From contig OU015568.1 in NCBI GenBank assembly GCA_907165135.1, forward strand, positions 5,084,001 through 5,148,000: DNA of 64,000 nt, read 5' to 3'. Of the stretch, positions 35,213 to 40,607 are shown piece by piece. This stretch comes from Oikopleura dioica. Taxonomy: Eukaryota > Animalia > Chordata. The notes beneath the pieces were generated by a model, which ran no database searches, had not been told where the DNA came from, and was given only the letters and a program-made list of their open reading frames with translations. Within the stretch, counting starts at the first letter, position 1. Each line of letters starts with the position of its first letter. Made by a program: the position numbers and the translations under genes.

Positions 35213-35389
35213 ATGGTTTTACCGAATAGCGAGAATGGGGATTTGTTCTCATATAAATTTAAATTCCTTCTATTCGTTGGGTCTTTCACATTTTTATCAT
35301 CGGCAAATACATATTTTTTTAAAGAGAATGCTCTCAACGAAGAACTTTACAGGTCGCCTACAACTGCTGATTTTAACCAAGATGAGAAG
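35213..35389 (+). pseudogene. Truncated duplicate of the 5' end of the fucosyltransferase-sulfotransferase gene
   Basis: [30 protein letters not shown] matches [30 protein letters not shown] from 36051 onward; the match stops abruptly at GC-rich repeat DNA. Confidence 0.7.
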
Positions 35390-35714
35390 AGTCTCGAGGG
35401 ATTCGCCTGCCCCCTATCCGGCGGGTGACAAAAATGACCGGACCACGCGGGTGACAAGCCCGCGATGCTCGAACTGCTCAACTCCGCAGGGAACAGCGAG
35501 TTGCGGTTGGAAATCGCTTATCAACCGTGGAGAATCATGATCAAAGAGACGTTTTGAGCTCGAGTTTATCCACACAAGGCTCATATTTTCAGAGGATCAA
35601 AATTATTTTCGACCCACAATTTTTAGAACAATACTTTATCCGGTTAAACCATTACACTAAACCATTACACCTACCGGGGTAGTAGGGGGTTATTGTTTGG
35701 GCTGCCCCTAAGTC

Positions 35715-35825
35715 TAAACCTAACCCAGGGGGCTACGCCCCCGGGACCCCCCCACCTAACGCCTAAACCAGGGGGTTTCGCCCCCCGGACCCCCCTTAAG
35801 AGTTCCCAGTCCCTAACCCTAACCA
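35715..35825. repeat. Tandem pair of GGGGGCTACGCCCCC-type hairpin units with CCCTAA-like flanks (related copies near 39195 and 54828)
   Basis: ctaacccagggggctacgcccccgggacccccc and ctaaaccagggggtttcgccccccggacccccc, followed by ccctaaccctaacc. Confidence 0.6.
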
Positions 35826-36050
35826 TTAGCTCAGATTCTAGAGTTATTGGATGGCTCGAATCATAGGCCCGAATGATAACCCCTCTCTTCGCCTACCGGT
35901 TGTGCCTATCTCCTAGCGCGTTTCTCGCGGGTGCCTCAGCTGCTTCACCCAAGCGCCTCTCGCGCGCCCTTTTAGAATTCGCTCTAGCGAGTGCGTAGAG
36001 AAGATCTCTTTTCCCTCTTTTTTGCAAATTATTCAAAGCAAGAATTGTCG

Positions 36051-39000
36051 ATGATTTTATCGAAGATCAAGAATGGCGATTTGTTCAGTTTTAAATTTAA
36101 ATTTCTCTTATTTGTTGGATTTTTCTCATCGTCGATTTTTTATATTTTAAAAGAGAATGCTCTCAATGAAGAACCTTACAGATCCCATGTTACTGTTGAT
36201 TTTGACCACGATGAAAATCTTATCGAGAAAAAAGAGAAGATAATTATTCCAGTCAATCTTTACGGTCCAAACAACCAAATGATGGGCCTCCGTGAAAGTT
36301 TATTCATTACACGTCTCATGAATCGAACTTTTGTTGCTCCTCTATTTTTTCGACATCATACTACTGGGGGTCATCCCTTTTCCGAAGCGGCTCTTTTTAT
36401 CGATCAGGAAAATTTATCCAAAATGGTAAAAACAGTCAACTCAACTGATGTTCGGTCAATTTGCGGCGACTCATTCGATCTCATTCTTGATCATCGTCCA
36501 GCCTCAACATACGGTAGCGCTCGGATTGAAAAAACGTTCAAGTATTTTAAAATGAATTATGAAACATGGAACAGGAAATCGGCATTATCTTAAGCAACCG
36601 AAGTCGTCAAATTTTGGAATTTTTAATTATTGACAAATTGCTAATGGCAATTGTCAATGAAAAATTTATTTATCAATTATCAAGTATTCGATGAAGAAGT
36701 TATGCCGGTCAGAACAGAAAGGGTCCATCTAAAAAACATAGGATCTGAAGGAACTAAAGCTTTGACAAGATCTTTGAGCCAATACGAAGAAAAACGATGC
36801 ATTTTATTAAGGGGGAGGTCGACGAGAATCGGGATTTCCGTGACCAAGAATGCGGGAAACATGAAAAAATAGATTTTCAATTGATTTTTATCTTAACTCC
36901 GCAACTGGTTCTCGACATTTTTTGTCGATAAGGCCCTGTCCTCCTATTTCGAGATATTTGATTTGGAAGTTGAGCTTCGAAAAATATTTTTCATAATAAC
37001 TCGTAACAGAAAGGGAGGGCCCAGTTTTTTATTGATTAAATAGAATGCCCTTATCAAGAGCCTTCGAATGAGCCCACTCCTGTTCACTAACGACGCCCGG
37101 ATGGTGAAAATCATCTTTTTACGTCCGAGGCCTAGTAATGAGTATTTGCACTGACCTCCTGCACCCTTAGCCAAAAATAGGTCGCGCTAATCCCTCTCGG
37201 TGGCGCTTGGCACCGGAAAGTGTCATTAAAATCAGACTTGTTTTAGAAGGAAACTTTCTTATAACATTTTTATCCTGATGATATATCTGCATTTATGAGC
37301 TGAAAACATCTTTTTATAGTTTTTCGAACATTGAGATTTCGAAAATTTCATTAAAATGTCGAAATTCCGACCTTTTTTTGGAAGCAGTTGTAAGAATTTG
37401 AAGGAGATATAGTTGCGCTAGAGAAACCTAAAAGCGCCATGTGAAAGAACACATTGGTATGTCGACGAAGTTTCAGAAAATTATCTCAGCGGGAAGGTCT
37501 TTTCGACAAAAATTGTCAAGCTCCAGTTGGGGGGTTCTTGGGGCGCGCTCCATTTGGGGAGTTTAAGGACCCCCGCGAGATAGTCACCCTCTCGGCCCTA
37601 TAGCGCCAGCTGTGGTTAGATTAAAAGAAATCTCTGAACTCCTTTACTAGATTCTTAGATTAAAATATTTGCCTCTTAAATAAATTTTTTGAAAATTAAA
37701 GTCAATTTCGTCGTGAAAGGCAGTCAAAAATGGCCAATTTCGAAAAAACCGTTTGGGACTCCCTTAAGGGGGGTCGACGAGAATTTTTTCTGAGGTGATC
37801 GTAATTTCGCGTTTACACATGGTCTGTGCAAGAATCTTATATTTTTGGAATCTACAGATCCTCGCGAATCTGTTGAGCCTATAATCATTCGATTAAAATA
37901 AGATTAAGGGTATAAAATTATGAAAAATGTAAATAAAATGACTATTTTATGTGCATTTTCGCGAAAATGCCCCTACTTTAATGGCATTTTTGACCGATTC
38001 TTCTGGCGAAAATTTTTTCTACTTCTCGCCGGTTAATTTTTTCAGCCCTTTTTCATTTGCCGTTAAATTCAGATTTTGCCTTTCTGATCCGCATTTTTGG
38101 TCACGGAAATCCCGATTCTCGTTGACCCCCTCCTTAAGATACACATATGGTTATCTCGACTGGACTTCGCTGTTCCGCAATCAATTTAAAAATTTGAAGC
38201 CCTTCGTCGACTCAGATTTCGAGCTCATCAAAGAAACCATCAAAGCAACTGTTCGACCGAAGAAAATCAAGAGTCTAGCTGAGAAAATTGTGTCAATCAT
38301 CAAATTCGAAGGACTTAAAGAGCACAAAATGGCGGCTTTCCATTGGAGATACGATTTAAATGACTGGGGAGCTCATGAGGATGATTATAAGGCACTTATG
38401 AAAAATGTGCTTGCAATTAGGGACAGACCCGAATACTTAGCGGAATTCATTCAACAAGAGCTTGGGAAGAGGAACATTTCGAGACTGGTGATCTTTTGTC
38501 CTCCAAGAAATGGGTGAATTTTTTCAGAAAAAACGCACGAATAAGACATAAAATTTGACCCAAAATTAATGATCACGGCTTCGTGGAGCAGCTTCGTTCA
38601 ATCATTGATGATAAAAAAATTTTCACTGAAAAAGAAATTCTTTCACTTTTTCGATCTGATCTGGATAAAATTGATGGCGACACCGAGATCTCTCTTGTCG
38701 AACAAGAGATTTGCTTTCTTTCTGATTTTTTCCTGTTCTCAGAAAAATCTTCTTGGAGCATGAATATAAATCTCGAACGAGTTATTGATGGAAGAACTGA
38801 TAATTTATTCAATTTGGATTTTCCTATTATAAAAGAAAATTGCGATATGGGGATAAGAATGGGTAGCAAAGACGAGTTTGGGGTTTTTCCTTTAGTTTCT
38901 TTTCCAGGCAGCGGAAATACGTAAGTACCAAAAAATTGTTATAATTGATAACCGGATACCCTCTGTTCGCCGGGATATCCTCGGTTCGCCGGGATTCGGG

Positions 39001-40607
39001 GAAAAAATTCCCGGCGAACCGAGCGTCATCCCTGATATTTTTTCAGGCACTACAAAGGAGCTTACTTTTTTGGTAACCAGGCCCAATAATTCGTTGCAAC
39101 GAAATATTCGTTAGGAAAACGAATTATTCGTCAGAGTAAAAAACTTTGATGAAGTAGTAAACCGACCCAAAATGAACAGAACCCCCCTTTAGATCTAACC
39201 CAGGGGGCTTTGCCCTTCGGAAACTCTCGTCATTGAGCTTATTTACCTAACCCTTACCCCTTACCCTAATCATAATCCTAACCAATCATATGAGAACCTT
39301 AGGAATATCATTATCGCTTCATACGCTTACTTTTTTCGTAGTTGGACACGAATGCTGCTTGAAAAATCAACTGGAATTTATACAGGAAGCATTTACAATG
39401 ACCAACCATTGTTCAAAGCTGGTATGCTCGGCGAAATCACTCTTCCTAAAGATGGTGAGACTCTCTTCCAAAAATCGCATGACATCAAGGACGAACAAAT
39501 TTCAAATCCAAGAGGGATACTTTTTCTTCTTCGAAACCCATTTGAAGCGGTTGTGGCCGAATGGAAACGTAGATTGACAAAGGGACATACGTCAGATGTA
39601 GAAGAGAATGTTTTCAAGGGCGAAGAATGGCAAAATAAGGGCAGTTATTTTTTGAAGAAATGGAGAACTCTTGCGAAAGAAGTAATTGACGTTTATTTAG
39701 GAAGGGTCGATTCCAATGTACTTAGGGTTTTTATCAGATCAGTTTGCGAGGCGAAGTTAATATATTTAAATATTCTGAAAAGAAAATAAATTGATCTTTT
39801 GAAAGAAAACAAAAACGTTTCACTTCACGTATTTTTTTATGAAAACTTGAAGGCTGATGCTTTACATGAAATGGAACAAATTCTTGATTTTATTGCGCAA
39901 GAGGATTATTTTCATGTTTCTGATCGTAGCACTCGAATGAATTGTTTGAAAAATGTAAGTCCTACTTGCAATACGAAACATGGCTTTTCAAATTTATTCA
40001 AATTTGCTTTTAAGGGGGTAGAACTAGGATTTTCGAAAATAGCCAATTCTAGACCGGTGCTCAAAGCCAGGCAAGCTAAGATATTCAAATTCTCTCTTCA
40101 GCTGAAGATAGAGCAAACTTAGATCTAATAACCTTTTTCTTAAAATATTTTTCGTCATCAAATTTTTGGCGGTAAAGAGGGAAACACCAACCTATCTCAT
40201 CGAAAATCGCCATTTTAGCCTATTCGCGTCCTCAAATTTCTCGAGTCACGTGACTAGTCAAATTTTTTTAATTTTATTTTTTGATAGTTTAACGCGTTTT
40301 CTCGCAACATCTATGAGGAAATTTCGTTAGAATAAGTAAAAACAGGTTTTTCTTATTTAAAAGGGCTCTCGAATATCACTTTTTTCGAAAAATCTAGTTC
40401 TACCCCCTTAAATATTATTTATTTGAGACGCTTGAAGAAACTGAAAAATTTCATCGACCAAAGAAGAAGCCGTCTTTCGAATATTTTACGAAACCAATGA
40501 TTGAAAAAGGAAATCAATATATCAATGAAGTTTACGATCTATTGGAACAGAACAATTTCCCTACTTTTGAGAAACGGAGCTATTTGAAACAAAACACAGC
40601 TTCGTAA
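36051..40607 (+). CDS. Type II Golgi-type protein: O-fucosyltransferase-like domain fused to a WSCD-type PAPS sulfotransferase domain
   Basis: N-terminal signal anchor; [38 protein letters not shown] and [23 protein letters not shown] (O-FucT motifs). The same exon continues to [11 protein letters not shown]|[20 protein letters not shown], then [17 protein letters not shown] and FHRPK (WSCD-type sulfotransferase). Confidence 0.8.
36811..38133. mobile_element. 1323-bp non-autonomous TIR element with TTAA TSD inserted in a coding exon
   Basis: TTAA at 36807-36810 and 38134-38137; ~45-bp TIRs GGGGGAGGTCGACGAGAATCGGGATTTCCGTGACCAAGAATGCGG; flanks rejoin to [14 protein letters not shown]. Confidence 0.92.
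40014..40407. mobile_element. 394-bp intronic MITE with TTAA TSD and GGGGG termini
   Basis: TTAA-GGGGGTAGAACTAGGATTTTCGAAAA ... TTTTCGAAAAATCTAGTTCTACCCCC-TTAA. Confidence 0.88.

Follow-up and report, generated by a model that had tools for sequence, protein, structure and literature searches.

A TTAA-targeting transposon in a coding exon of an Oikopleura dioica gene as a candidate young intron

Analyzing a 64,000-nt stretch of the Oikopleura dioica genome (the window: assembly GCA_907165135.1, contig OU015568.1, 5,084,001-5,148,000, forward strand; all coordinates below are those of the window), we found that a TTAA-targeting DNA transposon with terminal inverted repeats (TIRs) splits the coding sequence (CDS) of a predicted membrane protein with glycosyltransferase-like and sulfotransferase-like halves. 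Comparison with relatives indicates that the transposon landed in a previously continuous exon, and the insertion is shared by independent samples. We give a probability of about one-half to the reading that the insertion is tolerated because the spliceosome excises it from the pre-mRNA as a young intron of 1.3 kb. This reading is favored since a gene under constraint would not be expected to have a null allele as its common allele in several samples; it is the sharing of the insertion, in a gene that still looks selected, that makes splicing probable.

The inserted sequence, a composite non-autonomous DNA transposon, occupies 36811-38133 (1,323 bp, 39% G+C, without coding capacity) and lies between two copies of a TTAA target-site duplication, at 36807-36810 on the left, where it forms the tta-a of Leu-Arg codons, and at 38134-38137 on the right. 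In the host frame the site reads ...tgc att tta TTA A/element/TTAA ga tac, splitting the codons TTA-TTA-AGA (Leu-Leu-Arg). A first, sequence-only reading of this stretch had described the 1,323-bp TIR element, its TTAA duplication, and the split codons, all of which we recovered at the same positions. The arms of the inverted repeat (36807-36855 and 38089-38137, 49 nt including TTAA) are 92% complementary. Without the TTAA, the left TIR (36811-36855, plus strand, beginning GGGGGAGGTCGACGAGAATCGGGATTTCCGTGACC...) and the right TIR (38089-38133, minus strand) are identical at 41 of 45 nt, and a 29-nt core of the TIR occurs at these two sites only in the 64-kb window, against a chance expectation of 0.

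Copy number was read from X3 and X4, two independent DNA read sets assembled to contigs over the 4.6-kb stretch that holds the gene (single-copy baseline in X4, ~59). The left TIR stands at ~270-290x single-copy depth in both sets and the right TIR at ~205-230x, and the segment 37684-37991 reaches ~65x. The interior is low in copy number: ~1-10x over 37068-37683, ~1-4x over 37222-37683, and ~1x at 37530-37683. Contigs from other copies of the family part from the element after 36859, before 38089, and directly after 38137. The segment 37764-38133 carries an internal TTAA and a second left-end-like sequence, GGGGGGTCGACGAGAAT, with a TIR-like end at 37764-37787; the right 366 bp resemble a separate miniature inverted-repeat transposable element (MITE), and an X4 contig links another, foreign TTAA to position 37768. 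With high-copy termini, a low-copy interior, and a second TTAA and TIR-like end inside, the insert is a composite or nested structure on a high-copy MITE family and no simple 1.3-kb TIR unit. Open reading frames (ORFs) of the interior have no significant Pfam match (the sole weak one, Raftlin, E=0.0018, is below threshold), the best Rfam match is likewise subthreshold (E=0.44), and exact-pattern scans of metagenome contigs with the TIR cores found no other copies.

The state of the site before the insertion is preserved in relatives. A phmmer search with exon 2b, the coding segment right of the insertion (38137-38514), against 1.84 billion representative proteins returned three matches only, all of them DNA-derived ORFs from metagenome or Logan contigs. 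The top match, P0001, and its cluster mates, P0004 and P0005, are marine-metagenome ORFs that read ...EKQCILLKYTFGLLNW... uninterrupted across the insertion site. At the nucleotide level, the marine-metagenome contigs L001 and L002 are collinear with 36220-36810 and 38134-38605 of the window at 75-80% identity, and both have a single TTAA exactly where the window shows TTAA-element-TTAA. Since these relatives read through a single TTAA, the site was exon before the insertion and not an old intron, and the comparison with other individuals or species that the sequence-only reading proposed does reveal an empty site. It is thus very improbable that the exon was left untouched, whether because an older intron houses the element or because the assembly is at fault: L001, L002, and the three ORFs cross the single TTAA with the same codons on either side, and the independent read set X3 has a contig over the left junction. 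At the DNA level, the empty site and the junction contig together rule these two explanations out.

That X3 contig (36314-36835) extends 25 nt into the left TIR, and the insertion is therefore present in X3. In X4 the flank contig stops at 36812, a single-copy interior contig (37397-37790) has a depth of 46 versus ~59 and differs from the assembly by four substitutions and one indel, and there is no full-depth empty-site joint across the insertion. The insertion is common to independent samples and not private to the reference. The sequence-only reading had named a rare allele together with other inactivating lesions in the gene as what would speak against an intron; the insertion is in the reads of both X3 and X4, and the CDS has no other lesion. 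That reading had also described an intron gain "caught in progress." The insertion into an exon stands, and "in progress" is doubtful: the interior has diverged by ~0.6-1% between samples, so the insertion is not brand new.

The contigs over the insertion also show some irregularities. A low-depth X4 contig (5.2 versus ~59) joins 36811 to 38143 with 'AT' between, an empty site 2 nt short of precise, which may represent a paralog, an infrequent allele, or the footprint of an imprecise excision. The X3 junction contig contains one unplaced 1-nt gap. Contig depth in X3 is 37-39 left of the insertion (35990-36835) versus 77-83 right of it (38738-40529), while in X4 it is equal (58-61); one possible cause is heterozygosity in X3 for a structural difference in the left half.

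A second TTAA element in the same gene shows a different history. This 394-bp MITE (40010-40411 with its TTAAs, element 40014-40407, ends GGGGGTAGAACTAGG) makes up most of intron 6; no TTAA element besides these two has both of its ends within the window. It sits in an older intron, and it is present in the assembly and absent at full depth from X3 and X4 (joints 40009 to 40408 and 40004 to 40408), where the empty site is a precise single TTAA that leaves a 75-nt intron. Because this MITE is cleanly polymorphic, TTAA elements must have moved recently; the insertion in the exon, shared among samples, is the older of the two.

The host gene, modeled by frame logic and by comparison with L001, L002, and a paralog, L003, is otherwise intact. 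With the element taken out, its CDS comprises seven plus-strand exons with 2,040 nt, 679 codons, and a single terminal stop, in agreement with the earlier impression that the downstream exons look intact. Exon 1 (36051-36573) encodes a signal anchor and the N-terminal half of the glycosyltransferase-like domain. Exon 2a, left of the insertion (36685-36811), is placed by frame and by the alignment with L001 and L002; exon 2b, right of it (38139-38511), carries an HWRYD motif. The remaining exons (38592-38920, 39342-39700, 39806-39954, and 40428-40607) encode the sulfotransferase-like half with an FPGSGNTW motif, judged sulfotransferase-like by eye from the sequence. The product would be a type II membrane protein whose two halves are fucosyltransferase-like and sulfotransferase-like, the fucosyltransferase label being a weak one. 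No window exon reaches Pfam significance for the host family, and the GDP-fucose protein O-fucosyltransferase family (PF10250) matches a paralog, P0002, below its gathering threshold (E=0.016, 15.2 bits versus a cut-off of 31.5). Language-model neighbors all belong to fucosyltransferase families, which serves as a lead only. Searches for the host family gave no sequence match in the PDB, and the AlphaFold model of P0004 is too poor for a fold search (pLDDT, its predicted local confidence score, 49.7). The "fucosyltransferase domain" of the sequence-only reading therefore has behind it the subthreshold match of a paralog and the language-model neighbors.

The ordinary introns of this gene bear on which donors may be used. 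By frame logic, three of the five are noncanonical, two GG-AG and one GA-AG; in O. dioica ~10-11% of introns are noncanonical, mostly of the G?-AG kind (PMC8008620, PMC7072748). Such introns, together with the compactness of the gene and the marine-metagenome origin of its relatives, are consistent with this species. The intron at 36574-36684 fits only as GG-AG (donor AACA/GGAAATCGGC), and L002 agrees with it in donor and phase; a GA donor would break the frame in the window and in L002 alike. The intron at 38512-38591 also fits only as GG-AG, and the resulting PPRN/LR join is found in L001, L002, and the paralog L003. A GT..TG intron at 38514-38557, suggested by conservation of the 3' part of intron 3, was dropped in favor of this shared join. 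From exon 38592-38920 onward the introns are GT-AG, GA-AG, and GT-AG in order; the GA-AG intron (39701-39805) is needed for frame and has the published AG/GAA pattern (PMC7072748). L002 carries an extra intron of ~52 nt and GA-AG type (~1934-1990 of the contig) where exon 1 of the window is continuous (~36431), a presence/absence difference between close lineages. Intron 4 (421 nt) is long and largely transposon derived, with further repeated DNA at 38916-39223 whose depth reaches ~20x single copy in X3.

Selection on the gene was assessed from the allelic coding single-nucleotide polymorphisms (SNPs) among those listed, for which the expected synonymous fraction is 0.20-0.27. These comprise 12 synonymous and 3 replacement changes (binomial P ~1e-6 to 3e-5). 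Downstream of the insertion the listed SNPs are 9 synonymous to 2 replacement, and in the single-copy exons alone, 1 and 5-7, they are 8:1 (3:1 in exon 1 and 5:0 in exons 5-7).

If the element is retained, the reading frame meets a TAG stop at 36870-36872. Two candidate donors on the plus strand lie at the start of the left TIR, a GG (AAG/GGGGAG) at 36812-36813 and a GT (GAG/GTCGAC) at 36818-36819, and the right end would supply a pyrimidine tract, CCCCCTCCTT, and an AG acceptor (38126-38138), the AG at 38137-38138 being the last A of the TTAA plus the exonic G. GG-AG removal of 36812-38138 (1,327 nt) would be scarless, restoring the ancestral reading exactly (CILLRYTY; predicted mRNA join ...TTATTAAG/ATACAC). 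GT-AG removal of 36818-38138 (1,321 nt) would keep the frame and add 6 nt for Gly-Arg (CILLRGRYTY; ...TTATTAAGGGGGAG/ATACAC). The GT donor, AG acceptor, pyrimidine tract, both in-frame options, and the unspliced stop had all been pointed out before and are present as described. At the level of sequence, then, the element and its target duplication offer frame-preserving splice sites.

A TTAA-targeting element entered the TTAA within the Leu-Leu-Arg codons of a continuous exon. We propose that the acceptor is the AG in which the final A of the duplicated target meets the exonic G, just downstream of the C/T-rich terminus of the right TIR. The donor would lie at the start of the left TIR, either the scarless GG at 36812, of the G?-AG kind already used in the host gene, or the GT at 36818. 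Because the ends of such an element are inverted repeats, either orientation at a TTAAG would offer the same splice signals. Tentatively, this may extend to a general process, in which Kolobok-like TTAA elements starting with G insert at TTAAG, are removed scarlessly as GG-AG or GA-AG introns, and are an ongoing source of the G?-AG introns of O. dioica, as MITEs are in Fritillaria, with a donor-tolerant spliceosome neutralizing exon insertions in a compact genome.

Several observations weigh against splicing. Splice-signal coincidences are cheap: a G-starting element at TTAAG is always removable exactly as a G?-AG intron, and a GT is expected within a 45-nt TIR. By chance such signals are expected in roughly 1/4 to 1/3 of such insertions. 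Both candidate donors are poor fits to the GTAAGT consensus, the would-be intron is ~27x the published median length (49 bp, PMC8008620), and the element contains two sense-strand AATAAA signals, at 37679 and 37932. As RNA, the TIRs are predicted to form a 50-bp duplex (-94.5 kcal/mol versus -33.8 +/- 4.3 for shuffles) burying both donors and the acceptor, and this duplex could either bring the splice sites together or block them. Two oligo-dT RNA runs, probably from another lineage under the same species label, have no reads on the whole 4.6 kb; even the ~270-copy TIR received none, and the runs are no test of splicing. Transcript-derived proteins over the junction were not found by phmmer, a word-index search, or exact look-ups of the junction and exon ORFs. 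The SNP pattern, too, may in part be older than the insertion: divergence is ~0.6-1% in the element interior but ~2% at synonymous and intronic sites of the flanks, so that many SNPs there may have arisen before the element arrived, and the selection signal may be partly historical. Moreover, the depth of exons 3-4 (38146-38915) is 3.5-6x single copy in two DNA runs, with exons 1-2 and 5-7 at single copy, which points to near-identical copies elsewhere in the genome; whether paralogs or a captured fragment, these could make the host copy dispensable.

Most of these points also speak for a gene-breaking insertion, in which nothing is spliced, the protein ends at the stop at 36870-36872, and the copy is a null or decaying allele that rose to high frequency since the gene is dispensable or has near-identical backup copies, with its intact exons and SNP bias left over from earlier selection. 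The region is also untidy, with a truncated duplicate of exon 1 and transposon debris upstream (35213-35990). We nevertheless regard this explanation as rather unlikely: the insertion is present in samples of other studies and has acquired substitutions and indels of its own, yet the 2,040-nt CDS holds no stop or frameshift; the five listed SNPs of the single-copy exons 5-7 are all synonymous (5:0); and the harmless intronic MITE of the same gene is rarer than the exonic insertion. The 5:0 ratio, the strongest constraint in the gene, also fits a split gene, in which a truncated upstream product is made and the downstream part, at least the sulfotransferase-like half, is expressed separately, from a promoter in the element or by spliced-leader trans-splicing at the AG at 38137-38138. 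Trans-splicing and operons are known in O. dioica, and the element gives a good acceptor with only weak donors. A split gene is nonetheless improbable, as the SNPs of exon 1 are likewise biased toward synonymous changes (3:1), neither a promoter nor a trans-splice site is in evidence, and the first in-frame Met past the acceptor falls within the glycosyltransferase-like domain. Removal of the element as an intron thus remains the reading we favor.

The upstream debris consists of a truncated second copy (77% identity) that covers the promoter-proximal region and some 60 initial codons of exon 1 (35213-35398, ~830 bp upstream of the true start), followed by G+C-rich repeat DNA (35399-35990) with a transposon end, ...CCCCCCTTAA, at 35792-35799.

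As to its class, the element resembles Kolobok, which targets TTAA and has purine-purine (RR) termini (PMC6004289). TTAA flanks the element on both sides, with a single TTAA at the empty site of the relatives, and its ends read GGGGGAGG... and ...CCCCCTCC. Neither the element nor its surroundings encode a transposase, so it may be called Kolobok-like by the resemblance of its ends; as a non-autonomous member it would be mobilized by a Kolobok DDE/THAP transposase from an element with matching TIRs. Like the Kolobok and T2-type MITEs of Xenopus, it combines a TTAA duplication and purine-purine termini with abundant non-autonomous derivatives; the Xenopus T2 motif is AGGRR, to be set against GGGGGAGG in the Oikopleura element (PMC6004289). 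The termini of piggyBac elements, which share the TTAA target-site duplication, differ. These are CCC...GGG beside the TTAA, in contrast to GGGGG...CCCCC here, and no piggyBac transposase is present. The preference of the sequence-only reading for Kolobok over piggyBac, based on TTAA and GG ends, thus agrees with the published Kolobok ends (PMC6004289), as far as ends go.

Few concrete cases of intron origin have been documented in animals. Transposon-made introns are established in algae, dinoflagellates, and a few animals, and among larvaceans for Fritillaria. Should the element stay in the transcript, the case would be one of ordinary gene disruption. If it is spliced, it would be a clean chordate example, with the uninterrupted exon still found in relatives, a TTAAG target, and persistence in the population under selection; it would come with a defined mechanism, the acceptor from the target duplication and the donor at the transposon end, and would link a particular type of transposon to the puzzling G?-AG introns of Oikopleura.

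The closest parallels are introners, non-autonomous DNA transposons that make introns, as described for Micromonas and Aureococcus (Huff et al. 2016, as cited in PMC13326754 and PMC11282704). They have been surveyed more widely (PMC9860276, PMC12130899), the latter study with validated cases from a sea urchin and from the tunicate Styela clava; the literature that we searched contained no published report of introners in Oikopleura. As in introners, a multicopy element with TIRs (~200-290x depth) and a target-site duplication landed in continuous coding sequence, the insertion is absent from relatives (the empty site of L001 and L002), and one splice site would lie within the element while the other is completed by the target-site duplication and flank. 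Unlike introners, the Oikopleura element has high-copy termini only, with a nearly unique interior, and at 1.3 kb it is long for its genome. In Fritillaria borealis, also a planktonic larvacean, MITE-derived noncanonical introns are reported at lineage-specific positions with TIRs and target-site duplications (Henriet et al. 2019, as summarized in PMC11282704 and PMC13326754). According to these summaries, the Fritillaria introns mostly have AG-AC or AG-AT ends and their splicing was shown experimentally, whereas the Oikopleura candidate has a TTAA target and would have GG-AG or GT-AG ends. In both larvaceans, as far as the summarized account goes, removal of the intron depends, or in Oikopleura would depend, on a spliceosome that accepts non-GT donors.

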